The notes beneath the pieces were generated by a model that was not told the DNA's origin, did no database searches, and saw only the letters and a list, made by a program, of their open reading frames with translations. A stretch of DNA of 64,000 bases, taken from positions 246,564 to 310,563 of the forward strand of contig NIVC01000261.1 in NCBI GenBank assembly GCA_002269645.1, in the 5' to 3' direction. Shown here one piece after another: positions 19,931-64,000 of the stretch. Within the stretch, counting starts at the first letter, position 1. The number at the start of each line of letters is the position of its first letter. The position numbers and the translations under genes were made by a program. The stretch comes from Macrostomum lignano (Eukaryota).

Positions 19931-19934
19931 GCTC

Positions 19935-30600: not shown

Positions 30601-33600
30601 GCTGGAAAGTGGTCACTTGTGGCTCCTTCGTCGGTGTGCTGGCGCAGCTACTTGCTACGGGCACTGCTCGTGCGCTCCGCAGCATCAGACCTGCCGAGGA
30701 ACTGAGTGTCGAGCCGTCGATGTAGTGGATAACGTCGACAACGAAGTAGAGGTTCTAGATGTGTCCGCCTTCGGTCCTCGAGGAGAATCTCAAACTGATG
30801 CAGAAACAACTCCGACTAGGTCTCTGTTGGCAGCGACTTGGCGAGTCCGTCGAGCAATGGGACGACCACCTGTTCGTTATGAAGTGAGTGCAGGTCTGGC
30901 TGAGTACAGTGAGCCAAGGGTATCTACGACGCTGTTCACGAGCGTGTATGGCATGACGTCGGTCTAAGGACGTTCTTGGCATTGAATATCACAGCTGGGC
31001 GTCGCCTCAATGTATTTAGATCATACAAGGTGTTTGTTCGGGCTTGGTTTGATCACAACACGTACGTCGTGTTCAGCTCAGACGGCGTACTGGTCAACCC
31101 GACCTTTCCGCGAGTGAATCGACACTACGGTGTCGGCGTCAAGGACCTGTTGTCACCAGATAGTCGACGGGATACCGATTTCATAACCAGTAATGACAGT
31201 CTGACTGTAGGGTGGCGAAATAAGTTCACAAGTCTAAACGAAGCACCGCCGCTGTCATTCCGCGTGTCTATTGGCAGTGAGATCGGAATGGACGATGTTG
31301 CAAACGTCGTCATACCTCCTGGAAACATCACCTATACATTCAATGGGCTGCAATTTGGGCCAGGTCAACGGTACTTTTCTACCGTGACCGCTCTCGATGA
31401 GAACGGACTCTCTGTTTCGGTATCATCTGATGGGTTCGTACTGGACTTGGATAATCCGTCTACGGGATTGGTGTTCAACAGTATTGGTAAGTTGCCTATG
31501 TCAACCCAAATTATTTATCTAACCTATTTATAGTATCAATCTTAACAAGTTTAATCAAGATAAACAATTTCTCACAGGTCACAGCAACTCGAAGTACTCA
31601 AGTGACCAAACGACTCTGTCATGCAGTTGGCACAGCTTCTTTGATCGAGAATCCTACATCAAGTCGTACTCTGCATGCATTACTTCCAGCAATGATGCCA
31701 GCAAATGCGACGTCGCCGACTGGAAGAATGTTAAGTTCGAGCAGAGAGCTACTTGGAAAGGACCTTGGCATCATGGAAGCACCTATTTCTGCCGTGCAAA
31801 GGCGGTCGACGCCGCAGATCGCAGCTCAGAGGCGATCACTTCTCCCGGAGTGACTATCGACACGACACCGGCTATTGCGGCAAACCGCATTGGACACCGG
31901 CCGATTAATGTCGGTAACCCGAGCTTCGAAGAAGGAGCGCTCCGACCTCCGAGCTCAGCGCCACTCAGCCACATAGTTCTAGCTGGACTCGAGTCTGTTT
32001 CGCCACGCTGGACTTTAAAAGATGGTCGAGCGATCGCAGTCCGCATTGGACATTCCATGGCCGTAGACGGAGAATCTGTGCTGCTGCTGTTCGGTCGGGT
32101 ATCGCAGACTTTGACAACCGAAGCTGGACGTCGATATCGGATGCAACTGTTTGCGTCTCATCTTCCCGTCTCTGACCCGCTATCAGTTACGGTCGGCGGT
32201 CTCGTCTCGGGTCCGGGAATGCTGCAGACGTTCCGGTTGTTCACCGATCTAGGCAGAGTGAGCTCTGGTGTAGAGTGGCACAAGCAGATATTCTACTTTA
32301 CTGCCGAGTCAGCGGAATCAACCGTTTCCATTGAGTCTCTGTCACCTCACACCGGTCTGGGTGAGTTTCCTCTCCTTAGTCATTTTTTTTCATTTATTTT
32401 GCTAATGCTTTAGTTTTGCCCCTTTACAAAGAGTTTAATATCAATCGTCAGCCATCGACATGGTCTCAGTATCCGTGCTCAACGTGGGAATTGCTGACTA
32501 CAACTCAACTGCTGCACCCGTTCATGTGGACTCGGTGAGCGTCAGAGACAGCGGCACTGTGCACGCCAGTTGGGACGTCTCTGATCCCGAGAGTGGCATC
32601 AGCGAAGTTCTTGGGCCATCGGAACAGTTCGTGGTGGGACGCAGCTTCTGCCGTTTACTCAGCTCGGACCGGCCAACGAGGCAAAGGCGGATGTGAGGCT
32701 CACTCACGGAATCAATGTCTACGTGTCGGTGCTGGCTATCAACGGTGCCGGAATTCCGCGACTCTTCCACTCGCAACCCGACCTGATCGACTTGACTCCG
32801 CCGGCCTTTGACTTTGTGCATGACGGAAGCTCAAGCGCTGGCCACACCGATCTGCAGGAAAGTGCGCGCGAGCTGTCCGTTCGATTCGGAGTCGAGGATC
32901 CGGAGTCGGGCCTGAGCGAGTGCTTCTGGTGCTCGGGAACTTCTGCAGCAACCTGCGACGTAGCAGAGTATGTGAAGCTGGCACAGGGCCAGCTGTCAGC
33001 AACACGGCTCATCAACGAGCCCGAGAAGCTTCTCGGCCAGCGAGTGTTCAGCTTGGTGAGGTGCTCGAACGGAGTCGGACTGGTGTCTACAGGGTGAGTC
33101 ACAGTCGGTTCAGAGGTGCATCGCAGCAGGATGATATGCTCAAAACTCGAATACCATTTCAGCGTATCAGCAGGCGTGCTCATCTACAACGGAGCTCCCG
33201 ATGCGGCACACGCGAAGCTGCGACTGCTCAGCACCTCTGTGACGCCATTCGGTCAAACGAATTCTGTGCTCGGTAACGCCACAGACCTGCAGCTGAGCTG
33301 GAGCGGCTTCACCGATCGAATTCCGATTCGAGACTACGATATTCGACTGAGAGAAGTGACTCGAAACGCTGCAGTGCCGGACTGGACTCGGGTGAAGGGC
33401 GCCTTCGTTCAGGCGGCAGCTTTGCACGGTCTGTCGCTAGCGAGCGGGCAGCGCTACCGAGCTGAGGTGCGAGCCGTGAACGCTCTGGGGAAGCTGAGCA
33501 GCATTGTTGAGCGCGAGTTCTCGGTGGACTCGCAGTTTCCAGCGCTGACTGGTAAGAGTGGACATTGTGACTTGTTTTCAATTCCGAGTTCAACCGTGAA

Positions 33601-35911: not shown

Positions 35912-38159
<2,248 letters not shown>

Positions 38160-38849
38160 TCACGCGCACGCGCAACTGCACAGTGAGAATATGATTCGGA
38201 TTGCAGCCCTTACTCACTGCTAGGGCTGAGCTCTTCTCTTCCCTCTATGCCTAAAAACGGTATAGGGAGTAGCGTGAGCAGCCAGAGAGGGAGGAGGGAG
38301 CAAAGCGAGGAAAAATAAGAAATCCAGATGGCTCCGTTCTCACGGGTGGCCTAGTAAGGCTTATTAAGGTAAGGCTTAGTAGCTCTCTTGGAGTGATTTT
38401 ACGTGGCACTGGCAGACCAGTATATTATATTCTATATGCAATATCCACGTGTCTTTCACTAACAAATGGTTTGGCTAGGAGCAGAAATTAACGGGCAGAG
38501 AGGCGACCCTATATGATAAGTTTCCCTACAGTAATTGGATAGCATCTATTTAAGTCTTGCTCTTGAGCCAGGCCTGGGGTAGGGGTGGGGGCTGCGGTAA
38601 CTGTTTCTTACCAATCAAGCGACTTCCGCAGCCCCGGCCCCTCACCCAGTAGGCAGCAATTTCGAATCCCAAAACACGACAACGGGAGCACGCGTGAAGA
38701 CGCGGAGCATTAAACTTCGTTAAGCAAAATTCTGGAAAGGAAACTCTTCTCTTATTTTTTCTGCGCCCGATTACGATAGTTGGAGGTTTGAGTTTAAAAT
38801 TTTCACTCTGAAAATTCCAGTCAGCACCGATTTCGGCGCTATGGCGCGA

Positions 38850-39965
38850 TTTAAACACAAAATTTGGCGCTGTTTAGACACTAATTTTGGCGCTGTTTAG
38901 ACACTAATTTTGGCGCTGTTTAAACACTAATTTTGGCGCTGTTTAGACACTAATTTTGGCGCTGTTTAGACACTAATTTTAGCGTTGTTTAGACACAAAT
39001 TTTGGCGTTGTTTGGACACAAATTTTGGCGTTGTTTGGACACTAATTTTGACGTTGTTTAAACACTAATTTTAGCGCTGTTTAGACACTAATTTTGGCGC
39101 TGTTTGGACACACATTTTAGCGCTGTTTAGACACTAATTTTGGCGCTGTTTAGACACTAATTCTGGCGCTGTTTAGACACTAATTTTGGCGCTGTTTAGA
39201 CACTAATTTTGGCGCTGTTTAGACACTAATTTTGGCGCTGTTTAGACACTAATTTTGTCGTTGTTTAGACACTAATTTTAGCGCTGTTTAGACACTAATT
39301 TTGGCGTTGTTTAAACACTAATTTTGGCGTTGTTTAAACACTAATTTTGGCGTTGTTTAGACACTAATTTTGGCGATGTTTAAACACTAATTTTGTCGCT
39401 GTTTAGACACTAATTTTGGCGCTGTTTAGACACTAATTTTAGCGTTGTTTAGACACTAATTTTGGCGCTGTTTAGACACTAATTTTAGCGTTGTTTAGAC
39501 ACAAATTTTGGCGTTGTTTGGACACTAATTTTGACGTTGTTTAAACACTAATTTTAGCGCTGTTTAGACACTAATTTTGGCGCTGTTTGGACACACATTT
39601 TAGCGCTGTTTAGACACTAATTTTGGCGCTGTTTAGACACTAATTCTGGCGCTGTTTAGACACTAATTTTGGCGCTGTTTAGACACTAATTTTGGCGCTG
39701 TTTAGACACTAATTTTGGCGCTGTTTAGACACTAATTTTAGCGCTGTTTAGACACTAATTTTGGCGTTGTTTAAACACTAATTTTGGCGTTGTTTAAACA
39801 CTAATTTTGGCGTTGTTTAGACACTAATTTTGGCGATGTTTAAACACTAATTTTGTCGCTGTTTAGACACTAATTTTGGCGCTGTTTAGACACTAATTTT
39901 AGCGTTGTTTAGACACTAATTTTGGCGTTGTTTGGACACTAATTTTGACGTTGTTTAAACACTAA
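38850..39965. repeat. 23-bp minisatellite (TAATTTTGGCGCTGTTTAGACAC), ~48 units with a higher-order repeat; degenerate tail to ~40230
   Basis: Period 23; diagnostic variants recur at 483- and 460-bp offsets. Confidence 0.96.
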
Positions 39966-40964
39966 TTAAGTCGCTTTTTAAACACCGATTTTGGCGCTAT
40001 TTAAACAATGATTGTGAAGATATTTAAACATTGGTTTTTGCGATATTTAAACACAGAATTTGTACACCGATTTTTTTGGTATTTAAACACCAATTTAAAC
40101 ACTGATTCTGTCGCTATTTGTTTAATTTTTGCGCCAAATAAACACTAATTTTGGCCTTGGCCTATTTAAACCCTAGTTTTGGCACTTTCTAAGCACTGAT
40201 TTTTCCCTAGCTAAAACACTGATTTTGGCGTCATTTGAACATGTACATGTATAGTTTTTGCTTCAAATATTGACAAAAATAGTTTCGCTTTCCAGTCTCC
40301 GTAGCATATAAGAGTTTAGGCCCTGGTAACGAATCGACGAAGAGCCAGATGAAGGAAAAGAAACTCTTGGGCCGTGTCTTGTAAGGGGCCACCAGTTATG
40401 GTGGGAATTCCGTCAGCTGTTGTTCCAAGGCCATGTTAGCTTGGGGGCGCTGGAAGAATGGACAGGGGGAAGGCGTAGGAGACAGAAGGAGCTCAGGGAA
40501 GGCTTCTATTCTATCCAACCAAGAATTCTAAGATAATCCCAGCGAACTATACTAGTCCAAGTATTTAACTAATATCCCTTCTAAGCAGCTAAGCTTATCT
40601 GCAATTCTTCTTTACAGTCGATTTCAATACGATTGAGCGATTGAAGAGAAAACCCGATCTGGACTGGAAACCCAGTCGAGTATGTTAGCATTGGAACGCA
40701 TGCATGGGATGGAGGAAGCTGTATAGATGGGGAGAAAGAATGAATCAACAAAAATCCCTGATGGAGCTGCTGGGGATGCTGGGGATGCTAGAGCGATCCC
40801 ACGTGTCGCGGTTCCCACGGTTCTCTCTCTGCATCTGTCCGCCTCCTCCCCTCTCCATCCTGTCCAAGGACAGTTTGACGCAGAACTTGGAGTGAAAAAC
40901 AGTGTATTCACAAGGCTACACTTAGCTTATGGAATGTCACCTCAATTAACCCTTTCAAAACCCC

Positions 40965-41892
40965 ACCAAGGGGCTTTAGCACCAAGGGGCTTTAGCACCA
41001 AGGGGCTTTAGCACCAAGGGGCTTTAGCACCAAGGGGCTTTAGCACCAAGGGGCTTTAGCACCAAGGGGCTTTAGCACCAAGGGGCTTTAGCACCAAGGG
41101 GCTTTAGCACCAAGGGGCTTTAGCACCAAGGGGCTTTAGCACCAAGGGGCTTTAGCACCAAGGGGCTTTAGCACCAAGGGGCTTTAGCACCAAGGGGCTT
41201 TAGCACCAAGGGGCTTTAGCACCAAGGGGCTTTAGCACCAAGGGGCTTTAGCACCAAGGGGCTTTAGCACCAAGGGGCTTTAGCACCAAGGGGCTTTAGC
41301 ACCAAGGGGCTTTAGCACCAAGGGGCTTTAGCACCAAGGGGCTTTAGCACCAAGGGGCTTTAGCACCAAGGGGCTTTAGCACCAAGGGGCTTTAGCACCA
41401 AGGGGCTTTAGCACCAAGGGGCTTTAGCACCAAGGGGCTTTAGCACCAAGGGGCTTTAGCACCAAGGGGCTTTAGCACCAAGGGGCTTTAGCACCAAGGG
41501 GCTTTAGCACCAAGGGGCGCCAGCACCAAGGGGCTTTAGCACCAAGGGGCGCCAGCACCAAGGGGCTTTAGCACCAAGGGGCGCCAGCACCAAGGGGCGC
41601 CAGCACCAAGGGGCGCCAGCACCAAGGGGCGCCAGCACCAAGGGGCGCCAGCACCAAGGGGCGCCAGCACCAAGGGGCGCCAGCACCAAGGGGCGCCAGC
41701 ACCAAGGGGCGCCAGCACCAAGGGGCGCCAGCACCAAGGGGCGCCAGCACCAAGGGACGCCAGCACCAAGGGGCACCAGCACCAAGGGGCGCCAGCACCA
41801 AGGGGCGCCAGCACCAAGGGGCGCCAGCACCAAGGGGCGCCAGCACCAAGGGGCGCCAGCACCAAGGGGCGCCAGCACCAAGGGGCGCCAGC
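40965..41892. repeat. 16-bp minisatellite with two variant domains (ACCAAGGGGCTTTAGC then ACCAAGGGGCGCCAGC)
   Basis: 34 TTT units, an alternating zone at 41509-41572, then ~20 GCC units. Confidence 0.97.
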
Positions 41893-42253
41893 CAATGGGC
41901 GCCGGCACCAAGGACGCCAGAAATATAGCGCTGAGATTTTAGCACCAATTGCATTCCACTTTTCTAATCATTTCTGAACGTAACCTGTTTTTAATTATAA
42001 ACCAATTGTTTATTTGTCAAATTTAAACTCTGAGTTTCCTGCTAGATGTGAAGAAGTTTATTGATAGCTTCAAATAGTTTCTCACTGGCTGAGGCTCCAC
42101 TGACAGTTAAAAAAATTATAAAGATGACAGATAAGTGAAAATATGAGAAAGAGATAATATATCTTTATATCTTATCACCTCTCATAGAGAGCTGATGAGA
42201 GGGGAGAGGAGAGAGGAGAGCTGATGAGAAGAGAGAGGAGAGATGAGAGAGAG

Positions 42254-42775
42254 GGGAGCTGGAAGGAAACGAATTTGATAGAACCGGATAGAGAGAAGGG
42301 AGCTGGAAGGAAACGAACTTTGATAGAACCGGATAGAGAGAAGGGAGCTGGAAGGAAACGAATTTGATAGAACCGGATAGAGAGAAGGGAGCTGGAAGGA
42401 AACGAATTTGATAGAACCGGATAGAGAGAAGGGAGCTGGAAGGAAACGAAATTTGATAGAACCGGATAGAGAGAAGGGAGCTGGAAGGAAACGAACTTTG
42501 ATAGAACCGGATAGAGAGAAGGGAGCTGGAAGGAAACGAAATTTGATAGAACCGGATAGAGAGAAGGGAGCTGGAAGGAAACGAACTTTGATAGAACCGG
42601 ATAGAGAGAAGGGAGCTGGAAGGAAACGAAATTTGATAGAACCGGATAGAGAGAAGGGAGCTGGAAGGAAACGAACTTTGATCGAACCGGATAGAGAGAA
42701 GGGAGCTGGAAGGAAACGAATTTGATAGAACCGGATAGAGAGAAGGGAGCTGGAAGGAGACGAACTTTGATAGAG
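42254..42775. repeat. 44/45-bp purine-rich minisatellite, ~12 units
   Basis: GGGAGCTGGAAGGAAACGAA(A/C)TTTGATAGAACCGGATAGAGAGAA. Confidence 0.95.
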
Positions 42776-44432: not shown

Positions 44433-45027
44433 TTAACCCAGTCTAACAGGATGTTTGCAGCCCCGGCCCTAGGCTTGTCCAATTCTGATTGGCTACCACT
44501 CTCCCTATTACTGTTAGCCACTTACGCACAACCCCCTCCCCATAAGTCAGCTGCGTCAACCCACTGTCACCACCTAGCCTATCATATGCGCTAAAAAAAA
44601 CTGTGCGAACCCCGTCGTGTAAATCCACGTCAGAGTTAAATTTAAAGGTTAACAAGGATCTGTCAGCAACAAAAAGGACAATATCGGTGGACTGGTTTAA
44701 ATAAAGCGTCTGATAACAAGCGTGATAAGCTATCTATCACTATATCTGATTGGACTACCTGCTGAAAAGAGAATAGCGATTCTCCAAACCTTGAACAGGA
44801 CGTTCAAAACTTGCTTTGAATTGCACCTGTCCTAATTTGTAGATGTGCAACCGACAGCTCAGCCGCAGCTATCGGTGTTGCGCATTTGAAGGCTGCGTAC
44901 GGCTGTTCAGTCCAAGGACTGGGTGGGGGGCTAATCCTCAATTACCCCCACCTATTTTACAGCTGAGTGAACTGAAGAAGTGCAGAGTTTCTCAAGGACA
45001 CAAATTATTCCGAATATGTCTATCTAG

Positions 45028-45075
45028 ATAGAATCGAACCCCCGACCTTTTAGACGCACTAACCACTAAGCTACA
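45028..45075 (-). other. tRNA-derived fragment (SINE head or truncated tRNA pseudogene) with Pol III A and B boxes
   Basis: Minus strand TAGCTTAGTGG (A box) and GGTTCGATTC (B box), only 22 nt apart, too short for a complete tRNA. Confidence 0.45.
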
Positions 45076-45483
45076 ACCTAGTGTTTTTGTTTATAAATGA
45101 AGAGCCAAAGACTGACTGTTATTATGCATGGATCTTTTTCTCATTCACTGGACGATATTTGGTTGGCTATTGTCTCTTTTTATTTCGAGATTAATACTTT
45201 TTTCTGCTTTTGTGATTTGCACTAATGTTCTTCTTGTTTGTGAATGTTTTGTTGCATACAAATACTGCATGCCACACCGCAAAGTGACGATAAAGACCGA
45301 AGTTTAGTTATTAATGAGGCTTTAAACAACTGACAGCATGCTGTTGTTGCTTAAATTCAATCCCTCGATTTCACTTTCTATTTAGTCGGCTGTAGAAAGT
45401 TTAACAATAGCCGATTAAAAGTTAGCAACGCAAAGATCTTAGACGTTAAAGTACATTTGGATTTGTTAGTTAATCAAAGCCGA

Positions 45484-45993
45484 TCAGCGGCCCGGTTCCT
45501 GATGACCATCCAGGTGCAGCCAGTGCAGCACCGAGTGGCGGCAGTGCTTGGAACAGACGCAGTCAGGATGCCCATTGTGAATGAGGAAATCGCCCACGCA
45601 GAACGGGTCATTCGAATTAAAGACGTTTCGGCAGAGTCGAGTGCACAGGGAGTTCAGCTTGACCCTCTGCAGGTCTGTTGCGGTTGAGATAACGATTGGT
45701 TATTTATTAGTTGCTTAGTCATCAAGTGTGCGGCTTTTAGGGCCGCTGACCTTTTACCGCCTTGTGGGTTGGCCATCATAGGCGCTAAATGAACGAGAAG
45801 CTTACGATAAATTCATTCCTGGTTGCAACAAAAATAGTTTTTTTTGTTTTAAAACGCGATATATTCGGTAACAATGGACATTGTATAAGCTGAACATACC
45901 CGCTTCTCCGAAAACCCTCCGTTTAGCAGTAGTTTGGCTGCCTGTCACGGCTGCGATTGCGACAATAGCGAGAATTCCAGCTGCCTTTAGCAT
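45484..45993 (-). CDS. Small secreted Cys/His-rich peptide precursor, 103 aa, 3 exons (45993-45900, 45784-45758, 45674-45484)
   Basis: MLKAAGILAIVAIAAVTG signal-like N-terminus. Two GT-AG phase-1 introns (115 and 83 bp) join in frame to ...LCTRLCRNVFNSNDPFCVGDFLIHNGHPDCVCSKHCRHSVLHWLHLDGHQEPGR*. AATAAA ~300 bp downstream. Confidence 0.72.
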
Positions 45994-47620
45994 GATGAAG
46001 CTCCTGTAAAGCTAAGAGCGTGGATGGTTTAATTTTAAATAGACTTAGAAGAAGTAGAATTAGAAGTATAATAGCAGTCCTATCCGAGCAAGACTCATTT
46101 TTAACAACAGCTCTGATTTTTATACTCGAATTTTTGGGTACTTTTCTTTAAAAAATTCGTTTTTGTTAATCTGATTGGATCGCATTAGCCCGGGGTCGCA
46201 TCAAAGGGATTTTATCAAAGACACTAGTCCCAGAGAAGTACTGATTGGCTGGGCGAATCAATGACATGTTAATTTTTACGAGGAATTATTTTGTATATTT
46301 GTGTCAGATAAAAATGATTATTTACACATGTAGCTGCTTTTTGAGGCCCTCTTTGAGGACATGCACTTAAAGTACAATCGGCGGCGGCATATGAAAAATT
46401 AAACTTTGACATCGCATCACTGCATCGCACCGCCTAGAAATCAGTCGGGACCAGCTATGGAATCAGGATTTCTTCCAGAGGAGCGAACGAAGAATTTGCG
46501 AACTCATGAGAGATGACTAGCGAAATAGGGAGAAAAACAGATGAGCCCCCAGTCCCCCCCCATTCTTTAGCTCTTCTGTTTAGCTCAACATTCTGAACGA
46601 GCCTTGGAATCTGAGGAATTGTTATAGGTATTGATTTCAGCTTTACCATTCTGAGATGCTGAGATTTAGAGATTCTGACTAATCCTTCTCACCTAAAAGA
46701 AGAACAGCATTCTTTGCTTTCTGAAGAAAATTTCATATTTACAATTATTGCTCGAGAAATCTTCTTTTGCTACTCGTCAGTAGTCACTACCCTTAACTGT
46801 TTAAAAGCGCTTCAGCAAACACTGGAACGTTTTCGTCGTGTCCACAACGTATGTCCAAGTCGAAGTACTGTAGCAATGGCAGCTACATTCAGTTTACACG
46901 TCCTGACTGCTGATCATTTGAAACTTGCAGTGAACGCACAATATTGTGAAATACGAGCGCAAGTACGCGTGAATTTAAAGGTCAACGTTTTCATTATAAT
47001 TTTAAGCTTCTAATGCAGATAAGTGTGTGTAGGGAACGTGAAAACTAAAGTACTGAAAAATATTCGCGGAAGGGTTGCGCCCACCTTCGGTGATGTCGTC
47101 CGCCTCTTGTACTGTACAGCATTCCTTGTACTGTAGTAGTCCAGAATTATGCTACTCCCGAGTTGCGGTAGTTATCTGGATAGCTCGTCCATCATAATGT
47201 GAATATTTTGCTTTATTTTGCTCATAAATCATTCGTGCAATTTGCGGTTGTTCCACAGCAATTATGAATGCGTCAAGTAGGTGGGAGTTAGGAATATTAC
47301 AAGCTCGACTGTGCGATTAAATTCATTCGAGCTGCGTTGGTATGCGCTAGGAAAATTTATAAGTGTCGAAATTGTGCGAGCTAATCCCATTATGGGTTGG
47401 TAGGCAAGCATCGGAACGCAGATGCACTCCCGTCAGTCTCTCTCCTTTCGTTCGTACATTCAGACGCATGTGCAGAAGGGGATAGGGAAATCCTATATCC
47501 ATCATGTCCCTTGCAGCCACACACTCGTAGCATTGAACCCTGAACTCTCAGATATACATGCAAGCCGATCATATAAGCAGTTGCGCAAACAGCTAAAATA
47601 CCGGACAAAGAAAGCTGCAT

Positions 47621-50600
47621 ATGTCCACTGCTATTCTTGCTACCAAGCACGGAATTCAAGAGCCGAGTATGGAACAGCTGCAGCAGCAGCAGCAGCATGA
47701 TAGGACGCCAAAAGCGAACCAACTGCGCAGGTCTGCTATCGAGTTTCTCGGATACACGACAGCGCACGGCTTGGGAAGATTCGCCAGCCAGTCCAGTGCA
47801 ATCGGCAAGCTGATTTGGATCGGGTTCCTTCTGGGAACCTACTCAGGATTTGCCTATCACCTGTACACTCTCTTTGACAGGTTCGCTCAGGCGCCTGTTC
47901 TCACCACCATGACCATGTCCAGTCTGGGATTCCAGTTCCCGGATGTGTACATCTGCCCCGCCCAGCCAGTCACTATGAGCAGGGCCAGCAAAGAAATTGA
48001 ATCCGTTTACATTAGTTTCAACGCTAGAGACCATGTGAAACCTGAATTCAAAGCTAATTTCTTTCGATTTAATGGAACAAATGACGATTTATATGCGTTG
48101 AGCAAGCCGGCTAGGGCAATACTTTACGTTCTCAAGGCCACGGAGGCCGCTTTCATAGCAAAGTTTCAACTTCCCCAAGATGGTGAGTCATATAGTGCTC
48201 TTTTTCATATTTTGATACTTAAGTCATAAGTGTTTTCTTTGTATTAACTTTTAGAATAATAGCATCAGATTACATATGGTTGCTAAATTTTGCTAGTGGT
48301 GCTATGCTTTGTTACCGTACATGTATATTGATGTTCGGCCTAAAATATTCTCAGGAGAGTTGCAGGCACCATCTGGCGCAACGCCTTTGGCGAATTTTCC
48401 ACATTCCGCAACCAAAGCTGAGGCATCTCTGCACATTCCGCTGACTGTTGAGAACATGCAAGCGCTAATACTGTACGCAGACTGGATGAACAGCAAGCAG
48501 CCTTGACTGTCCAATTGTCGGACAAGTACAATCTCATGGATTTGATATGGATCAGATTTGATATCAGACGAATCGCACCACCCGCCACCTAACTTTCGTG
48601 AAGAAGATACAAATAATTTTTATTGCGCACAGATTCGTGGAGAGTTGGTTATGACAGTTAAAATATGATCGCTGAAAGGATTCAACGTTGATTGCATTGC
48701 AGAAGATGCACTCTTAGACTGTCGAACCAGCTTGTCTGGAGAGGAGTACGCTGGCAATAGAAGTTTCGCGGTGACATACGATCGAGCGCGAATCGATCTA
48801 CAACGCACTGACCGGTCGCTAAAGCCGTACACGACGACCAAGCCGTGCATTCGATGGAGCGAAGCTGCTCGGATGCTGAAAGCTCGAGGCGCAGCAAGCC
48901 TGGGCGACCGGCTGCTGATGCTTAATTACTCTGACAGCGAGTCCCGGTGCCGAGCTCCGGTCCGACTGCCGCTGTCTGAGTTTTTTCCGATTGGCAGCAG
49001 TGAGTGATAAAAAATTATGTTGACTCTGTGAATTTTGCGGATACTTTAACAATTTATCTTCTACTGTAATTGCTCTCGCTGACTCCAGAAGAAACCTTGT
49101 CGGGCAATAAATACGTCGAGTCTAGTCGATTCGTAGTTACGATAAAAATAAGTATTCCAAGCTCAACCGCAGTTAAAATTGCTCGAGCTGTGTTGCTATA
49201 TACTAGGAAAATTTATAATTGTTTATAGCTGTTCGAGCTAAGCCTATTATGGTCTGGTGTGGCAACCACCGAAACGCAGATGCACTTTAGCACTTTCCGT
49301 CTTTCCCTCTATTATCGTTTGTGCATTCAGGCGACTGTGGATGTAGAGGAAGGAGATACGGGATTTACTAATAGCCACATGGCTTCGAGCCTTTTATAGG
49401 TGCATGCCAGCAGTCATCGTTTACTCATCCTCTTGCAGAGAACTGTTGCCAAATATTTTTCTTACCTGTAGTTAATACTAAATCAGCTGATAATTTACCA
49501 TTAGAAATGCATTTAGCCTTGATGATTTGTTAATAAATCTAAACTTTGATTTCTTCTATTAACTTTTGAACACAATATCAGGATCGCTGCTACAACGAGT
49601 AGGTTGTTTTGCAAAAAACTCCAGCACTGTTGAAGAGAACTTCAACAAGACATGTCTCGTACGTGGCCGAATAACTACAGAACTGTGCGCCGACTGCTGC
49701 GATGAGCTCGACTTCACGCACATTGCCCTGCGGGACGGCGAGTGTCACTGCGGCACTTGGAACAATACACAGCAGGGGTTCTGCGACAAATTATCGATTA
49801 ACAGCGTCGCAAGGAAATGCGATTGCGATGTCAATGTTTTTTGTATAAGAGATACCGGTAAGTGAGGGAACAGAACTGCTGCAATTTTAAATGCGCGCAA
49901 ACAATGCGAGCTAGCTTTTTAATCAAGTCGTGCTTCATTTTCAGACTCAAAGCCGCTACGAATCAGCAACTCAAGCGTCCTGACGGCATTATCAAACGGG
50001 CCCTACTGCTTTTTCAAAGACGATTTTGGCAGGCTTGAGGCTGCTTTCTGCAACGTCCCACTCTGCCGTAGGTTTCTAAGGCTTCAATTTTGAACGCTGC
50101 TGTTGTAGAAGGACACCGCACACGCCTTCTGAACTTTTGATTTGCTGATGGGGCCAGTTTCAAACTGTTCTCGGTTCAAATTTGCGATTTGGTAGGACGG
50201 GTTTTCTGAGTGTTGATTCGATGTTAACTGGTCAAAAGCATTGAGTCAAGAGGCTTTAACCGTGAATAAGTGTACAGATGTTAGAAATAGAACTATTTAA
50301 CACAGGCATTAGGTAAGAAGTCCGCGCTAAATTTCTTTCAAGATTACTCTTCAGGAGGCGATCCGTTTCGTCTAAGTTTTTCGTCTAATTTTCGTCGAAA
50401 GTGGTCATTGATAGAGTTCATTTAGATTTCTTTAACGCCCGTAAAGATGCTGACCATACATTCGCTATTGAAACAATTTGAGCAGACGGAATTTTCGGAG
50501 CTTAATAAAAGGCCACGCGATTCGACGGTTGGCGTTCGGCCAGGATTCACGAGTTCCAAATAAATTACCGTGGGTAGAAGTCTAAGCAAGGACCATTAGA

Positions 50601-53600
50601 AGTTACTGTTGTACTTGTATTCAGGCTGTAACACAACTGCTACAACGGTAACTTCTAGTGGCCCTTGAGTCTAAGCTCCAGACTATATATACCTACATGT
50701 TTATACATGCGAATGCATAAGCTACGAGTATAGTCTAGTAATGTACGAACAACGCACTTAATCTACTTAATGACTTGTATGACGACGTCGACTATTAACA
50801 TCGGCTGGCAAACGTCGCAATCTCCGGTTTTGACAGTGTAGTATGTATGAGTAGCGCGTCTAACCGCTGATGCAGACAGCGATTCCTTAATAAACTTAAT
50901 AAAATTTCAGTAACGTTGAGTACTACAACTTCATTTTATAGGCATGAATTCCGGCTATGACTGCATTTTTGGTACAACTGACGATGCAGCTCGGCAGCGA
51001 CAGCAGGCCGTCTACACCGGCTACAGGAATGTGGCGGCCTCGGGAGAGCCCTGCTTGGCCTGGAACCAGATCGTGGAACGAAACAAGCAGAGAAAGCAAA
51101 AAATAGATCCAGTTGGTAAAGTGCATGTACTATGTAGACGTAAAATAATAAAACGAGTTTTACGTGTAAAACCAATACGGTGGTGGTTACTAGTAGAACG
51201 GTGAAGTATTTATTCGTAAGTATTATATTCAATTAAAAAAATTAACGAGATTTTTCGAGGAAAGAAAGTTTTTCGGGAAAATTTATGATAATATTTAAAG
51301 CGCTTTAACAACAAAAACCTGGGCTAAGTTAGCAGTATGGTCTAATAGTTGTCTTGGACAATAAAAAACTAATTGACGAGAAAAAATCATTTATTAGAAT
51401 TTTAGATTATAAGTAGCTATACTTTATAAGTTACACGTATACTTTATATACAAACGATTATACGGGGAAGCAAGTTTCGCTACTACTCGTACAAGTTTAG
51501 AAACATCAGACAAAAACAATTTGTGACTGAATGAGAAACTCTTCTCTAGTAGCAGTAACAACAAAACACAATAACACAATAACGATATAAAAAAAACTGT
51601 GTAGTTGTTGAGTGAAAGTATTTTATTTATTTATATAATCCAGTTGTCCTCCAGCGCTTTTAATATTTAAACAAAATGTCTTTATATTTTAAACTGTCAC
51701 ATTTCAGCCAACTATGACTATAAAATGCGGATTCATTTGGAAACGCCCGACTATGACCGGCTTGAAGGTGCTGACAATTTTTGCAGGCCTGCTCAAATTA
51801 TCCGGGAGTTTGGCTTTTCAGACAGGGTTTATTAGTAAGCTTTGATTGCAGCTATACGCTTAATAGTGCTGCCAATTCAGTAATTATTTAAGTGCCAAAA
51901 CACTTGCAGCCCTAAGTTCTCATATCGAACATTTCAGTCGGAACCCAGATTTGATATCAGACGACGAGGCTCCCTCCTGCGTTTCTGACACCTTCGGAAA
52001 ATCCAACTTGGTAAATTTGGCATTGACCAAGTGCGACATTCCCGCCTGCTGTGAGTTTAGCATTTGCCAGTCAAATAGTCCTAAAAAATATTGTGCCAGT
52101 TTCTGCCTGCATCTGTCTCACTTCTGTCTGAATGTCTGTCTCTCGATTGGCGCCCGCCCCTGTCCTTGGGCCTGTCCCTCTCATCTTAGGCCTGTGATTT
52201 CACAACGCCGAAAACTCTACGAGTATATACGAGACCCTCTAGCTCGTACAAGACCAAATTTGACAACGCCAAATATTTGCATGGTCCTTGTTTTATTAAG
52301 TTTTCTACGATGTGAACTTTCCGTCATATGAATTTTCGGACTTTTAAAGGGTCTTGCATTTGGAGTTTTCAGTGTTGTGAAATTTCGGTCTTATAAAAGG
52401 AACCCATCAGTTCTTTAGTTTGATTTTTTAATAGGAACGTCCCCCTCGCCCCTCCCCTTCTGCTTAGGCCACAATACAATATACTACATGTATTTAGCTT
52501 TAAGATAAGTAGAAGAAATGTCACAGCCAATAAGTGCTACAGTTTTCTAGCTCTTATTGATGTCTTGCAGACACTAAAGTTCCCACCGTGACTGCTGCGA
52601 TCCGGGATGGCATCGGCAGCCACCTGCTGGCCCTGCAGTTCAGCAGCGACCTGAGCTTCACCCTGGTCGAGTGCTCCTTCGGTGGCCAGAGCTGCACTAA
52701 AGACGACTTCCTGAGCGTGTCTCACCCGCAGCTGGGCATGTGTCACCACTTTATGAAGCAGCGGTTCACCCAGAACATGTCCAGCTCGCAGTTGGCGGAC
52801 AGTCAGCTGTCAATCAAATATTTCACGGACTCGACAGACTCGAATGGTGGAACAATACCAGAATTGGACAAGCTGAACCGCATCGTGCACAGGTCCGTCA
52901 GCAATGATGAAAGAAGAATCGCTTTTAAAGTAAGTCCTACAAACAGGGAATGTTTTGAAACTGTTTGTACCATGCCGTTGCGTTGTGTTCTTCTCTCAAG
53001 TTTTCATGTCCTGATTATCATGTCTTAGTTCCTAGTTCTCAACCCCGCGTGTTCAATCTCATTTCTCATTGTTGGTAGAAGCTTTTAATTAATTACCACT
53101 TTATTAGTTCAAACATCTCCTGAATTTTGCAGGCAGTCATAGTCCCAGAAGGCAGCTACCCATGGCCGTCAAAGGGTGTCGATGTTGCCACAGCTCAAAG
53201 CTTGGATATTCAGTTGAGTTTAAAAAAAATTAAGAAGCTATCCACTGCATCGAGGCCCTGTGTTGAGAACACGGAGCCTGTAACTTACAGAATGCTGTCT
53301 TGGAAGCAGGCTAAAACCACGAGTTCTAATGAGTAAGCCTGGAAATATTACTTGGACATAAGTATGATCCTAAATTGCATTATCGTGACTTTCTATTTCA
53401 GGGAAAATATACGTTTACACTTCGTTAAGGCAGCCTCGGAATGGTGGCAAAAAATTGCTGTTCTGCGAGCACAACTTGAAAAACAAAACGCGTTGAGGTG
53501 CGTGGCATACTGTACTCAACATTTTAACCTGTCCAACAGTTTAATCCTACGATATGAAATCTTTTACATTTGACTTTGTAGACCCCTGCAAGCAATGGAT

Positions 53601-56600
53601 TGGCGCTACAATATCCCAAGCAAAGAAGACTACACAAACAAATTTACTGTGCAACATTTCGCTAAGGCATGTAACTGCTTGCCATCATTTCTGCCAATTG
53701 AAGTTGAGTTATTCTCGAACTATACCTTCTGCTTTGACACCAATGACACGGAGACTGTGTCAAGGCTACGGGAATCATGCCACAGAGAGCAGTTATCGAA
53801 GCTGCTGCAGTACCAGTTCGAGGCGGCTAAGAAAGCCTTGTCGCCGTGCGAGGAAACCGACTACGACATGCGGCTTATCTCCTACGCTTGGCCGAATCTA
53901 AGTGGCGCCAAGTCGATGGAGATTCTAAAGAAGCTGGCGCACAATTTTGGCTTAGGAACAGAGTACAGTCGTCTTAGAGGAATAAGCAGCATCTACAGCA
54001 CTTACTGGCGCTCTCTGGTCATGTTGGAAAGCAATCTGACCGAGAGCAACTTGCACGATAGAATTAATTTTGAAAACGAGCTAAAATTTCTTCGAGACCG
54101 ACTGGCTCAACTGACGGTTAAAGGATTGACGTCGTATGGTCAGGAAATTTCGGAAGAGGAGGCCTACCCCGCGAAAAATCTTCTGGCCGATATAGGAGGT
54201 AACTGCGTTTTTTGACTGTATGCTTTTGAATTACTAAAGCCAATCAAGTCTAAGAACCTTACACACCGCGGCAACAGCCACTGCCACGAGAATTGCACCT
54301 AACCCACCCCATTCGCTCAGTCACTGGATGAGGAAGAACTTTTTTAATTTTTTAATTGCACACTAGTTCTCATCTCCTTCTCTCTTACTAATAGTAGGCT
54401 CGTATGTTAATTTAGGATTTTTCTTTATTGATGATTGCTTTTCTGCGTTAAGACTTCGTGTTGAGTCGAAGTGGCCTTTCTTTATTGAGAGGCAGGCCGG
54501 CGAAGCTGGAGGGATGAAAAGCCTCCTCTGCATGTAAAAAGTCTGTTGTCCAGCGCTAGCTTTTCGAAAATGGCTTTGAAACTTGACTCCGCTTGCGAGC
54601 AACACTGACAGTCTCCATGGCGTGTTCTCATGAGTATCTTCTGGGTGAACGGATCTCTGCGTCCATTTACATGTATGTCAAAATTCTTTCGGGCTCGATC
54701 GCCAGTGATTCGAATGCCTCGGCGTTGATGGTATCAAACGTTTCCTTGTCGTCTGCGAAATAGTTGTCGAAGCGGAGCCGATGTGGAGCTCGTCAGCGTG
54801 TGGAATATCGCAGCCTTGCACATACTCGATGTTCAAGAGACGACATAGCCCAGCGCCCAATTCTCGGCGATGTGTGCAAAGCTGTAGAGATGTCACAGCC
54901 AGAAGAGACGACTCAGTGGCTGAAAATCGTGCCTAACGGCCATGAAGGAAGTTTGATTTTTGAGCAATTTGATTTGGCGGCTGACAGTGTCCTCGAAACA
55001 AATATTTCGGGATACCTCTCCTATGTCACTACGCGGCGATTGAGCTCTTTGAGGCATCCTTTCTTAGAGTTAACTCTTTTGATAGGCTATAGGGCTTGCA
55101 CTATATATTGCACTATTGGGACTTCAGCTTTGAGATAATCGAAAGCTGGAGAGCACTCATCGGTCCAGTCAAAGTTGATGTTAGATTTTTGCAGTTAATT
55201 AAGAGGAACAGTCTTTTGAGCGAAGTTCGGAATTAGTCTCCTAAAGCAGTTGACCAGTCCCAAAAGCTGGCGAGCTCAGATTTGTTTGTCGGGGCAGAAA
55301 CGTGTCTGACTTTTTTATACCAGCCGTTCATCTTAGCTAGATTCCGAATTAGAGATCGATCGGGCTTCACCAAGTGACTGCGACGCCATTTTAGTGTTTC
55401 TTTCTGTTTTACATTTGCGTTGAGTTGAAGGCCTTTCTGAATTGAGCATACCCTCTTAGGAAATTCGAAGCTTATTCCTAGTTAAATTCCTAGTCTAACT
55501 GCGAATATTCAAAGTTAATTAAACTACGAATGAGAGAACGATTGTGTCCTAGTAAAAGTGACTGTTTGAATTAATAGCAATTTATCAAAACTATACTTCT
55601 ATTGTTTATTCTTACTATTTTTATGGCAATTTATAAGAAAAATAATTCATTATCTTACTTGAATCTTACTCAATTGCTACATTTATAACTGCCTATTTCG
55701 ATCAATACTACTGAAAAAATAAACTGTGTGCTACTAAACGTAGTAAATAAACACGAGTATGACTCCTAAATGTTGAACTTTGATTCATGCTCACCTGTTT
55801 TAGGGCGTCACAATTTTTCACATTTTTCGATTTATTATCGTATATAGCTATCATTTCTCGCTCCAGAAAGTATAGTATTTCGATAGCTAAGTTTGTCTTC
55901 TGTTTGTCTTCAACTACTTATACGCGCTCGTACTTAATACTTCAACTACCTAACCTGAAGTATTCTATAATAAGCCCGAATTTTCATAAACCCGAAATAT
56001 CACAACTTCGAAAGTTCTAGCAACGTCCAACACTATTTTGGTTTTCGAAGTGATGCTGTTTCGGGTTTATGATAGAAAGCGCTTTTCGAAATTGTGATTT
56101 TTTGTGATTAAAGAGAAAGTCAAAGGGTCTGTCAACTTAAGATCATAAAGCGGAGCCCGAGTAACCTATGTACACAAATGATAGGTCATTCTGCTCACAG
56201 TGACACTAGGAAGATGGGTTTGGCAAAAAAGCGACAGACATTTGACTCGGGAGAACAAACAAGGGGATAATTATTATGTCAACTTAAGCTCATAAAGCAC
56301 CCTTATTATCCCCTTGCTTGTTCTCCCAAGTCCAATTTTGTCGCTTTTACTCGGGCTCCGCTTTAAGAGCTTAAGTTGACAGGCCCTTTCGATCATTCAA
56401 GTTTTCAAGTGCAACTTTTATCGCAATGCTGGACAAGATGAGTGGCCACTTTACTGATTGAGGTTTTTCCAGTCCATCAGTCTACCGATCAAACAGGTAT
56501 TGGAAATCCCGAATACTTTCTGAGAATTTAGTTTTTTGATCATGTATTCATGACAGCGCAAGAACCCCCACAAAAAGTCCCATCTGTCCCTGCTGCATGA

Positions 56601-60197: not shown

Positions 60198-63100
60198 TCA
60201 GTCTGGTCCGCTAGTAGCTCTCTCATTCCTCAGCTTCATCACCAAATTAACCGGCTGCTGGCGATAACCAACTGCTACCAGATCGTTGATCTCTTCGTGC
60301 TGCCCAAGACTCTTGCAGCAGCAGCAGCAGCAGCGGTCAAAACAGCGTGACAAAGGTGTCGGCCAGCGGCTCTGATAAGCCCCGTAGATTACCGGATTCA
60401 CAGCGCTGGTAGACATGCCGAAAAAGAACACTCCGTTTGAAATCAGTTCCACCGCGTCGTTGTACCGACCTCCGCTAAGCCGGTTAGCGCACGCAAATAT
60501 GTACAGGCCCCAGTAGGGCAGCCAGAGCAGTAGGAATGTCAAAATGATGACGGAGAACATTCGAAAGCTGCGCAGTTTTGCGCGAAGTAAAAATGCCTGA
60601 CGATAGCTGGCGATGAAGTTGCCGGCTTGGTTTAATTGCATCTCGTAGCTCGGCGGCGACTGGGTCTGAAGTTGAGACCGCTGCTGCTGCTGCTGCCGCT
60701 GTTTTGGATGATGATGATTATTTAAGAAGTCGGTGCCGAGTGTCGGCGAGCTGGGTTCGGGCTGCAGCGGCTGCTGCTGCTGTTGCTGTTGGTAACCGTT
60801 CAGACTTTCAGCATCCGTGGCTGAAGTGACGCAGAAGAAAATTAGACTCTCAAGGTGAGATTCTTGGGTTTGACCCGTTTGAGATAGCAATTAGAGTCGG
60901 TCTCACAAAGACTCTCAGGGTGAGATTCTATGGTATGCGATAGCAACTAGAGTCGGTCTCACAAAGAGTCTCAGGGTGAGATTCTAGGGTCTGAGATAGC
61001 AATTAGAGTGTTATTAAACTCTCAGGGTGAGATTCTAGGGTTGGAGATCGGTCAGTCTATAGGGACTGGCTAAATTCTTCCTAATGCTGGCTAGTTGCAG
61101 TCGGAAGATTAAATTTAAAATTTGGAGAAAAATTGCTTTGATAATCAACCTCAGAAAAAATCTCTCATTTGAGGGCTTGATTTATCAAAAATATGAAAAA
61201 ACGGCTTGGAAATGAATTCGATGGTGCTATAGCTGCACAATGAGATTTGACTCATTGAAATTTACATACTCCATTGTTTCCGAGAGTAGATTTTATCACG
61301 AATTTGCTGAAGGCAGCATGCGAGCGTACAAAATGGACATTTGCATTTGCAAACTGGACTGCTTGTTGTAATATTGGAATAAAACACTCTCCTGTCAGGC
61401 ACAGGAGGGTGTTCTACAGGAGGGTGTTACACAGGAGGGTGTTACACAGGAGGGTGTTACACAAAAGGGTGTTGTTACACAGCGATAGGCTATAGTGATT
61501 ATAGTTAAAGAGTCAATGTAAACTAGCTTTCACTAAAAGTGCAAAGAAAGCTTTGAAGTTGTACAATCTATTCAAAAAGTCGTATAGAGGTTATAACCTA
61601 CATTGCAGAGTCAAAATACATGTAATTCGATCCCCATAGCAGAATCCATCCACTTAATGAAAGGATTAGCTAGACTCGAATTACACATAGGCAACAAGTC
61701 CATAGTTTCAATGCGAACGGAAGTGAGCTTATAAGATAAAGCTTATAATTATTATATTATTATTATTTTGGTGAAGAGCGGTTGAAACTGCATATTTAAA
61801 GATTACAAGTTCCTCTCTGGTTAAGTTCATTATATATACGCGCTCGTAGGTATATTTCCACCATTCCGCTATCTCTCATCTCTGCCTCTCTCATCTCTGC
61901 CTCTCTCATCCATCCTCTCTCATCTCTGCCTCTCTCATCTCTGCCTCTCTCATCCATCCTCTCTCATCTCTGCCTCTCTCATCTCTGCCTCTCTCATCCA
62001 TCCTCTCTCATCTCTGCCTCTCTCATCTCTGCCTCTCTCATCCATCCTCTCTCATCTCTGCCTCTCTCATCTCTGCCTCTCTCATCCATCCTCTCTCATC
62101 TCTGCCTCTCTCATCTCTGCCTCTCTCATCCATCCTCTCTCATCTCTGCCTCTCTCATCTCTCCCTCTCTCATCCATCCTCTCTCATCTCTGCCTCTCTC
62201 ATCTCTGCCTCTCTCATCTCTGCCTCTCTCATCCATCCTCTCTCATCTCTGCCTCTCTCATCTCTGCCTCTCTCATCCATCCTCTCTCATCTCTGCCTCT
62301 CTCATCTCTGCCTCTCTCATCCATCCTCTCTCATCTCTGCCTCTCTCATCTCTCCCTCTCTCATCCATCCTCTCTCATCTCTGCCTCTCTCATCTCTGCC
62401 TCTCTCATCCATCCTCTCTCATCTCTGCCTCTCTCATCTCTGCCTCTCTCATCCATCCTCTCTCATCTCTGCCTCTCTCATCTCTCCTCTCTCATCCATC
62501 CTCTCTCATCTCTGCCTCTCTCATCTCTGCCTCTCTCATCTCCCCTCCTCATCTCTGCCTCTCTCATCCAATCCTCTCTCATCTCTGCCTTTCATCTCTG
62601 CCTCTCTCATCCATCCTCTCTCATCTCTGCCTCTCTCATCTCTGCCTCTCCATCTCTGCCTCTCTCATCCATCCTCTCTCATCTCTGCCTCTCTCATCTC
62701 TGCCTCTCTCATCCATCCTCTCTCATCTCTGCCTCTCTCATCTCTGCCTCTCTCATCCATCCTCTCTCATCTCTGCCTCTCTCATCTCTGCCTCTCTCAT
62801 CCATCCTCTCTCATCTCTGCCTCTCTCATCTCTGCCTCTCTCATCCATCCTCTCTCATCTCTGCCTCTCTCATCTCTCCTCTCTCATCCATCCTCTCTCA
62901 TCTCTGCCTCTCTCATCTCTGCCTCTCTCATCTCCGCCTCTCTCATCTCTGCCTCTCTCATCCAATCCTCTCTCATCTCTGCCTTTCATCTCTGCCTCTC
63001 TCATCCATCCTCTCTCATCTCTGCCTCTCTCATCTCTGCCTCTCTCATCTCTGCCTCTCTCATCCATCCTCTCTCATCTCTGCCTCTCTCATCTCTGCCT

Positions 63101-63819
63101 CTCTCATCTCCGCCTCTCTCATCTCTGCCTCTCTCATCCAATCCTCTCTCATCTCTGCCTTTCATCTCTGCCTCTCTCATCCATCCTCTCTCATCTCTGC
63201 CTCTCTCATCTCTGCCTCTCTCATCTCTGCCTCTCTCATCTCTGCCTCTCTCATCTCTGCCTCTCTCATCTCTGCCTCTCTCATCCATCCTCTCTCATCT
63301 CTGCCTCTCTCATCTCTGCCTCTCTCATCCATCCTCTCTCATCTCTGCCTCTCTCATCTCTCCTCTCTCATCTCTGCCTCTCTCATCTCTGCCTCTCTCA
63401 TCTGCCCCTCTCTGCCCCTCTCATCTCTGCCTCTCTCATATCTGCCCCTCTCATATCTGCTCCTCTGCCTTATATTCTAACTCGTTCTCAGTCTCTGTAT
63501 CTCTGATTGAGTCAGGAGTATAAGTACAAATGCCATTAATTAATGCTATTAACAATCGATCAATATTTTCCATAGCTGTTTACTCACCGCCCAGTTCGCG
63601 AGATTTCCCCGAGATCCTGCTAATAATGAGTCCGTAAGCTGTGCTCAAGCAGCACAGTGGGCCAAGAAACAGACTGGCAATGTTAAACAGCATGTAGGCC
63701 AGCACCAGCTTGTCCATGTGAGCTGTCAGGTGGTCTGTGCTAGTGGGCTGCATATCCAGCGAGACGCATTGGTAGAAATCTTCTCTCCATGGGCCTCGGG
63801 CCAGTCCAAAGAAGAATAG
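60198..63819 (-). CDS. Rhodopsin-family neuropeptide GPCR, GnRH/corazonin/AKH receptor type; last two exons (63819-63588, 60820-60198), 5' part beyond window
   Basis: ECL2 LARGPWREDFYQCV; TM5 AYMLF...FLGPL...AYGLI; RAKLRSFRM; TM6 FLLLWLPYW; TM7 FFFGMSTSAVNPVIYG. A phase-1 GT-AG intron joins ELG|ATD. Confidence 0.88.
60838..61048. repeat. 51-56-bp degenerate tandem repeat (~4 units) with a TCTCAGGGTGAGA palindromic core
   Basis: Direct reading; abuts the GPCR last-exon acceptor. Confidence 0.85.
61400..61480. repeat. 15-bp repeat ACAGGAGGGTGTTAC, ~5 units
   Basis: Direct reading. Confidence 0.9.
61872..63470. repeat. Pyrimidine-rich satellite, 15+15+14-bp units forming a 44-bp higher-order repeat, in the GPCR intron
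   Basis: A=CTCTCTCATCTCTGC, B=CTCTCTCATCCATC, mostly A-A-B. Confidence 0.97.
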
Positions 63820-63825
63820 CTGAAA

Positions 63826-64000
63826 AGTTAGACATGAGACACTTGTGTTAGACATGAGGCATTTATGTTAGACATTGAGGCCACTTGTGTTAGACATGAG
63901 ACACTCTGTTAGACATGCCACTTGTGTTTTCTGTTAGACATGAGGCCACTTGTGTTAGACATGAGGCACTCTGTTAGACATGAGGCCACTTGTGTTAGAA
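63826..64000. repeat. ~21-bp degenerate repeat CACTTGTGTTAGACATGAGGC (intronic, runs off the window)
   Basis: Direct reading. Confidence 0.85.

Follow-up and report, generated by a model that had tools for sequence, protein, structure and literature searches.

We show here that a stretch of 64,000 nucleotides of Macrostomum lignano DNA (hereafter the window) carries a real, transcribed, two-exon gene that encodes a secretory precursor of 94 residues, and that the six-cysteine domain of this precursor is predicted to adopt the helix-on-hairpin topology of the cysteine-stabilised alpha/beta (CS-alpha/beta) arrangement. Taken as a whole, our proposal is that this two-exon gene produces a CS-alpha/beta-like secreted effector, acting in host defence or in another extracellular task, and that it belongs to a family restricted to Macrostomum; we give this proposal somewhat less than an even chance of being correct in all its parts. 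Among the roles that we weighed, that of an effector secreted for host defence or for another extracellular task is the most likely, ranking above those of a Kazal-type inhibitor, a signalling peptide and an orphan secreted protein with another job. The gene itself is no discovery, as it was known and catalogued before this study.

Gene structure and annotation

The gene had been described from the letters of the window alone (the sequence-only reading) as a hidden and new gene of three exons, the middle one being a segment of 27 nucleotides that encodes APMMANPQG. Both of the proposed junctions (45900/45784 and 45758/45674) are indeed GT-AG and phase 1 in the sequence, and they give an open reading frame of 312 nt on the minus strand, with its ATG at 45993 and a translation of 103 amino acids, MLKAAGILAIVAIAAVTGSQTTAKRRVFGEA-APMMANPQG-DLQRVKLNSLCTRLCRNVFNSNDPFCVGDFLIHNGHPDCVCSKHCRHSVLHWLHLDGHQEPGR. 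Searching this translation against 5.8 billion protein clusters yielded a single match, the 94-aa hypothetical protein BOX15_Mlig008453g1 (P0001), whose locus carries the names BOX15_Mlig008453 / Mlig002236 and which is labelled "Kazal-like domain-containing" in UniProt. The contig with the P0001 gene, NIVC01000261.1 of assembly GCA_002269645.1 (Mlig_3_7), is 100% identical to positions 35484-55993 of the window. Neither the hidden nature of the gene nor its novelty survived these searches, as it is already annotated three times in the GenBank assembly (PAA48380.1, PAA79169.1 and PAA86856.1) and was catalogued as AMP-like group 118 by Irvine et al. 2023. Two more contigs hold the gene, with flank identities of 97.1% and 99.7%, and the three copies of the locus (L001, L002 and L003) encode identical proteins. 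Compared with window positions 44585-50185 (~5.6 kb), L001 and L003 are 97.1% and 99.7% identical, respectively. The presence of three copies in the assembly fits the known redundancy of Mlig_3_7 (PMC5730564).

The three-exon structure had to be abandoned because two independent gene models splice exon 1 straight to the last exon. P0001 corresponds to 45993-45900 joined to 45674-45484, with the nine middle-exon residues absent and the last exon matching in tblastn at 98% over residues 31-94, and an independent MAKER/SNAP model from the older ML2 assembly gives the same 94-aa product. The GenBank annotation of Mlig_3_7 was derived from RNA-seq transcripts only (StringTie, TACO and de novo assembly, with ORFs from TransDecoder) and it retained alternative transcripts with different coding sequences (PMC5730564). 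Residues of the middle exon occurred in no protein of the 5.8 billion clusters, and the alignment to the paralogue described below crosses the exon junction without a gap. On account of the two models, the transcript-based annotation and the cluster search we treat the middle exon as unsupported and the gene as one of two exons (Table 1); at most, the segment might be used in a minor isoform. The intron contains 10 AG and 11 GT dinucleotides, and of the AG..GT cassettes of some size that these could delimit only the 27-nt segment is in frame and free of stop codons; a cassette of this kind is roughly what chance allows. The intron is short when compared with the mean of 1.1 kb for introns in the M. 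lignano genome, so that no internal exon is needed. We also looked for a difference in selection between exons and intron in the three genomic copies, and the introns, with a single indel in a poly-A run, proved to be no more divergent than the exons, which makes the copies uninformative on selection. A tblastn alignment of the paralogue that extended into the intron was dismissed as chance because its score did not change (53.1 bits either way).

Upstream of the gene, the site CTCTTAGCTTTACAG may serve as an acceptor, either for a spliced leader or in the 5'-UTR; trans-splicing affects 38.8% of M. lignano genes (PMC5730564).

Table 1. Features of the peptide gene, in positions of the window
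Feature	Position	Strand	Basis or remark
Candidate TATA box TATAAAA	46118..46124	-	~125 nt upstream of ATG; read from sequence
Acceptor-like pyrimidine-rich CTCTTAGCTTTACAG	46004..46018	-	10 nt upstream of ATG; read from sequence
Coding exon 1	45900..45993	-	Residues 1-31 and first base of codon 32; identical to P0001
Signal peptide, residues 1-19	45993-45937	-	SignalP 4.1 positive; hydrophobic core residues 4-16
KRR, residues 24-26, end of short pro-segment	45924-45916	-	Read from translation
Single intron, 225 nt, GT-AG, phase 1 (GTATGT ... AACAG)	45675..45899	-	Annotated model
Proposed 27-nt exon 2 (APMMANPQG), candidate cassette within intron	45758..45784	-	AG/GT flanks, in frame
Last coding exon	45484..45674	-	Residues 32-94 and TGA; six-Cys domain, His tail, P-G-R
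Six-Cys core CTRLC-x10-C-x12-CVC-x3-C, residues 42-76	45541..45645	-	Single regex match in window
His-rich tail H75-x2-H78-x3-H82-x2-H85-x3-H89	45502..45546	-	Translation; AF2 pLDDT 42-71
Gly-Arg-stop, possible amidation signal	45484..45492	-	Translation; TGA at 45486-45484
Candidate poly(A) signal, first canonical AATAAA past stop	45179..45184	-	~300 nt downstream; read from sequence

The secretory precursor

A C-terminal glycine followed by a basic residue is a signal for peptide amidation, and the precursor ends, as had been claimed, in G-R-stop, the last residues being P-G-R before the TGA, which makes C-terminal Pro-amidation possible. Translation likewise bore out the seven histidines, including the series H-x2-H-x3-H-x2-H-x3-H, and the KRR site. 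The description of the product as a secreted Cys/His-rich peptide with a signal-like leader agrees with the hydrophobic core and with the published SignalP 4.1 result, which is positive and has the predicted peptide begin at Q20 (PMC10414684 S5). The signal peptide would accordingly be removed at S19|Q20, while a convertase cut after K24-R25-R26 would be optional, leaving a peptide of ~66-75 aa. The KR site is common to the paralogue P0003, and ProP 1.0 predicted no propeptide site in the precursor, the KRR included (PMC10414684).

The net charge of the predicted peptide is ~0 at pH 7 and about +5.6 at pH 5.5, this dependence on pH being due to the seven histidines; that of the paralogue is +2.7. 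The His-rich tail could bind metal. The paralogue as deposited, possibly a fragment, has neither the His tail nor the G-R end.

Relatives of the peptide

The spacing C-x3-C-x10-C-x12-C-x-C-x3-C that had been read from the sequence is confirmed by the translation, and it occurs a single time in the six-frame translation of the whole 64 kb. When 1.84 billion representatives were scanned exhaustively with HMMER, seven matches emerged, and the only significant homologue among them was P0003 (UniProt A0A1I8G4C8), also from M. lignano (47.5 bits, E=1.8e-7, 38% identity). The alignment between the two proteins is gapless over residues 23-77 and keeps the six cysteines, the KR site and the pattern FC.G.F....G.PDCVC; the N-terminus of P0003 is that of a fragment. 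The other matches of the scan were proteins built of tandem repeats (arrays of LDLa domains, a triple Kazal protein, one with a fibre-like repeat and one with a repeat of low complexity), and when rescored as single domains they reached 17-18 bits, with E>200 at library size, their apparent significance being the result of repetition. P0002, P0004, P0005 and P0006 were rejected as homologues on these grounds, being either repeat-inflated or of low complexity.

Outside M. lignano no homologue was found among the 1.84 billion representatives, and a profile built from the two paralogues retrieved nothing beyond P0003. The same profile gave one irrelevant match (E=1.3) when searched against PDB sequences, and Pfam contained no family for P0001 at E<=10 nor for P0003 at E<=1. 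As far as these databases reach, the peptide family thus appears to be restricted to M. lignano.

Predicted fold and disulfides

We modelled the peptide with AlphaFold2 (AF2) on the two-sequence alignment, in one run with the precursor and in another with the last-exon domain alone. The mean pLDDT was 68.8 for the precursor and 78.1 for the domain, whose five models ranged between 75 and 78, and the core reached about 79-89 over the two runs and 83-89 in the domain-only models. In both runs residues 30-49 form a helix that carries C42 and C46, and residues 59-64 and 67-72 form the two strands of a hairpin, the second of which contains C70 and C72; the hairpin is followed by a short turn of three residues with C76 and then by a weak strand at 82-85. 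The models support the earlier suggestion that CxxxC and CxC form a cysteine-stabilised alpha/beta core, in that CxxxC lies on the helix and CxC on a strand, and the helix-on-hairpin topology is predicted to be the CS-alpha/beta arrangement.

According to these models the product would be a mini-protein in which one alpha-helix with C42-x3-C46 packs on a beta-hairpin whose second strand bears C70-x-C72. Two disulfides, C42-C70 and C46-C72, would staple the helix to the strand as in cis-defensins, and the leftover C57 and C76 would pair together. The third bridge of six-Cys defensins starts at an N-terminal cysteine ahead of the helix. The peptide having no cysteine before the helix, this standard bridge cannot form and C57-C76 would take its place. 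The usual first cysteine had indeed been described as absent and an additional C-terminal one as present, and both statements are accurate, since C42 is the first cysteine of the precursor and C76 trails the CxC by three residues.

With the full-length and the domain-only models as queries, Foldseek retrieved no PDB structure below E=1, and the 50 matches listed for either model included no defensin; the method has little power for disulfide-rich domains of ~40 residues.

Similarity to defensin sequences and profiles

The best match among PDB sequences was the fungal defensin eurocin, with five cysteines and GHP.C.C aligned, at an E-value of 4.4 that is not significant. In hhalign comparisons the family scored 29.3 (86% probability) with a defensin set, 25.3 with LDLa repeats and 22.7 with Kazal pieces, the defensin set being composed of antimicrobial peptide sequences, of which the eurocin core was confirmed. 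All three sets scored better than 120 shuffles with fixed cysteines, but each contained its own search-picked best match. Once eurocin was taken out, the score of the defensin profile was 13.9, a value matched by 19 of the 200 Cys-fixed shuffles. We consequently discarded the hhalign scores as evidence of family membership, because the templates had been preselected as matches and the unbiased sets drop to chance.

The defensin- or toxin-like reading of the peptide thus stood in part: the cysteine scaffold and the AF2 topology are in its favour, but significant similarity was found neither in sequence nor in profile nor by Foldseek. As Foldseek, Pfam and the unbiased profiles give no significant link, this reading has to draw on the scaffold and on a predicted topology of moderate confidence only; on that footing we regard it as plausible, these sequence comparisons having revealed no residue-level homology to any known family. 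A published HMM and BLAST survey of 33 flatworm species reported no CS-alpha/beta, big-defensin or myticalin peptides, and both M. lignano assemblies figure in its dataset tables (supplementary files 2 and 3; PMC10414684). Its authors found surprising the apparent lack in flatworms of CS-alpha/beta defensins, which are known from sponges through to arthropods (PMC10414684).

Gene neighbourhood and other features of the window

A divergent gene of the DEG/ENaC class (amiloride-sensitive sodium channel, PF00858) occupies 47621-54215 on the plus strand, its first coding exon lying 1.6 kb from the ATG of the peptide gene. Both L002 and L003 have it as a called gene, but L001 does not, a RING-finger gene lying upstream there instead. 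Farther away, an ORF at 60198-60890 (minus strand) matches the C-terminal half of the rhodopsin family of GPCRs (7tm_1, E=7e-8), and a large exon at 36792-38153 (minus strand), downstream of the peptide gene, encodes the LAG1 DNA-binding and beta-trefoil domains of CSL / Suppressor-of-Hairless (E about 1e-46 to 1e-48). No bearing of this neighbourhood on the function of the peptide is demonstrable.

Just downstream of the gene there are three minisatellite arrays at 38842-40007 (23 nt x 51), 40964-41886 (16 nt x 58) and 42246-42774 (45 nt x 12), with copy numbers that vary among the three genomic copies of the locus. The segment 45020-45080 (minus strand), ~400 nt downstream of the stop of the peptide gene, resembles the 3' half of a tRNA (GGTTCGATTC, T-arm-like); ARAGORN and Rfam scans of the window called nothing, this segment included, and it may be a fragment of a tRNA-derived SINE. 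The window also contains a direct segmental duplication of ~10.9 kb (63-10922 and 22575-33595, ~22.5 kb apart and 98% identical), by which several long ORFs are doubled, for example 782-1618 and 23290-24126. An ORF at 18511-20004 (minus strand, 64% GC) with RT-RNase H and integrase domains is the remnant of an LTR-retrotransposon pol gene. Composition is extremely skewed at 10001-12500 (AT skew +0.42, GC skew -0.22) and at 62001-64000 (GC skew -0.62, AT skew -0.45), and long overlapping ORFs on both strands without a Pfam match fill 10636-12429, a skewed stretch that is probably a low-complexity repeat.

Possible roles of the peptide

P0001 is entry no. 118 among the flatworm AMP-like peptides (fAMP-LPs) listed in the S5 table of Irvine et al. 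2023, PLoS Pathog (PMC10414684). Six of the 11 AMP predictors used there were positive for it (54.5%), the predicted peptide having 75 aa, and it was removed at the step 'Peptide >60AAs' (PMC10414684). Cys-rich candidates were left out of synthesis in that study, in which entry 118 was given no fold, family or activity (PMC10414684). The names Mlig008453 and Mlig002236 are absent from the supplements of M. lignano papers that we searched, where neither an expression site nor activity data were found. In favour of a role in defence we counted the six positive predictors (PMC10414684) and the charge of the paralogue peptide; against an effector of the defensin type we counted its neutrality at pH 7, the KRR site missed by ProP and the negative published HMM screen.

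Among the other classes considered, the peptide could be a divergent, C-terminally truncated Kazal domain whose C-x3-C-x10-C subtype is follistatin-like and which would be secreted to inhibit serine proteases. In favour of this are the automatic UniProt name 'Kazal-like domain-containing protein' of both P0001 and P0003, the identical C-x3-C-x10-C spacing in follistatin Kazal subdomains, and P0007, a true Kazal protein (Pfam Kazal_2, E=2.6e-10), which aligns to C-x3-C-x10-C and has C[RT][NQ]V[FY]N.N[DE]P.C in common with the peptide. However, Pfam Kazal_1 and Kazal_2 do not match P0001 even at E<=10 nor P0003 at E<=1, the library E-value of P0007 is inflated by repeats, and a single domain of this protein reaches only 18.4 bits (E=210 at library size), which equals unrelated LDLa repeats. 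With P0007 left out, the PDB Kazal set scores 13.3, a value that 18 of 200 shuffles with fixed cysteines also reach. The paralogues do not share the hallmark D-G-x-T-Y-x-N (FCVGDFLIHNGHPDC vs FCSGLFTVALGYPDC), the gap between the fifth and sixth cysteines is of 3 residues in P0001 against ~12-17 in Kazal domains, and the long AF2 helix precedes the hairpin, whereas the Kazal helix follows it. The gene also survived the GO-annotation step, at which Kunitz-type inhibitor-like entries sit (PMC10414684). Putting these observations together, we hold a Kazal inhibitor to be quite improbable. The fact that three unrelated Cys-rich families (CS-alpha/beta, Kazal and LDLa) give similarly weak scores of 17-29 bits, and that unbiased profile controls with the defensin and Kazal sets are at chance level, could also mean that all these likenesses are coincidental and that we are dealing with a lineage-specific secreted Cys-rich protein with some other job, such as gland secretion, seminal fluid or a structural part in metal handling. 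The confinement of the family to M. lignano and the many orphan secreted Cys-rich peptides that this species encodes (PMC10414684 S5) agree with such a protein, but it would leave aside that the AF2 topology is reproducible and specific, and that CxxxC and CxC occupy precisely the places that the CS-alpha/beta motif requires; we regard it as doubtful, though deserving of serious consideration.

The leader, the P-G-R-stop and the dibasic site located 15-16 residues before the first cysteine in both paralogues would also suit a precursor of the prohormone or neuropeptide kind, with a convertase cut at KRR and a terminal Gly-Arg turned into Pro-amide, releasing a disulfide-rich signal possibly meant for a neighbouring receptor or channel, considering that the divergent DEG/ENaC gene is 1.6 kb off and the rhodopsin-type GPCR exon 14 kb off. 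Adjacency to a channel gene is nevertheless no evidence of interaction, and in L001 the similarity to the window stops ~4.2 kb upstream of the peptide gene, in the middle of DEG/ENaC, no gene with an ASC domain being called there. The amidation motif and the His tail are missing from the paralogue as deposited, ProP predicted no cleavage at KRR (PMC10414684), and a hormone with no orthologues beyond M. lignano in 1.84 billion representatives would be unusual, so that we attach little credence to a signalling peptide. Going further than the CS-alpha/beta-like effector that we prefer, one could propose that the two-member family is a true cis-defensin derivative, the first in Platyhelminthes, in which the N-terminal strand and its cysteine were lost, the third disulfide was re-routed to a newly acquired C-terminal cysteine and, in the copy studied here, a His-rich tail was added as a switch that responds to pH or metal; we consider this more specific history unlikely.

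If this peptide of a basal, free-living flatworm does have the CxxxC/CxC staple together with a rewired third bridge, then the scaffold would be present in flatworms but too divergent for homology searches to reach, or else it would be a clean case of convergent re-invention, and in either event the peptide would be a testable Cys-rich candidate from the class that was set aside by Irvine et al. 2023. Should the fold prediction be wrong, the gene would be one more of the many orphan secreted Cys-rich peptides in this genome.

Comparison with known systems

The LDLa repeat aligns with the peptide over 23-24 columns (CV..[FH]L..[NS]GHPDC), in which one cysteine is replaced by histidine and DxSDE is missing, and a single repeat scores 17-18 bits with E>300. 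Unlike LDL-receptor class A modules, P0001 is therefore without the acidic D-x-S-D-E calcium cage. Kazal and follistatin domains (PF00050, PF07648; PROSITE Kazal-like) resemble P0001 in its six cysteines, in C-x3-C-x10-C and in a stretch like P-x-C-x-G-D. The Kazal spacing is C1..C2-x7-10-C3-x10-C4-x2-3-C5-x12-17-C6, and the first three cysteines of P0001 fit it, the intervals that follow being x12, x1 and x3. Of the Kazal core C-G-x-D-G-x-T-Y-x-N-x-C, the D, the T-Y and the N are not conserved within the family (FCVGDFLIHNGHPDC, paralogue FCSGLFTVALGYPDC). Kazal domains run from a hairpin to an alpha-helix and then to a third strand. P0001, in contrast, has the order helix then hairpin in the predicted model, and its last cysteine lies 3 residues past the fifth, with no distant C6.

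The closest resemblance that we propose is with the CS-alpha/beta peptides, and differences have to be set beside it. P0001 is unlike them in having no cysteine N-terminal to the helix, so that the third disulfide would have to join C57 to C76, in the long helix (~16-20 residues) that opens the predicted domain without an N-terminal beta strand before it, and in an 18-residue His-rich C-terminal tail; unlike cationic AMPs, its peptide is neutral at pH 7. It resembles them in the succession of CxxxC, a single cysteine and CxC, in the AF2 placement of CxxxC on the helix and of CxC on the last strand of the hairpin, and in the layout of the precursor, where the signal peptide is followed by a short pro-piece with basic residues at its end and then by the mature peptide. 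Drosomycin, a related peptide with eight cysteines, ends in C-x-C-x2-C and uses two N-terminal cysteines. Plant defensins, whose frame also comprises eight cysteines with two N-terminal ones in use, end in C-x-C-x3-C, and the last six of their eight cysteines make up the cysteine frame of P0001.
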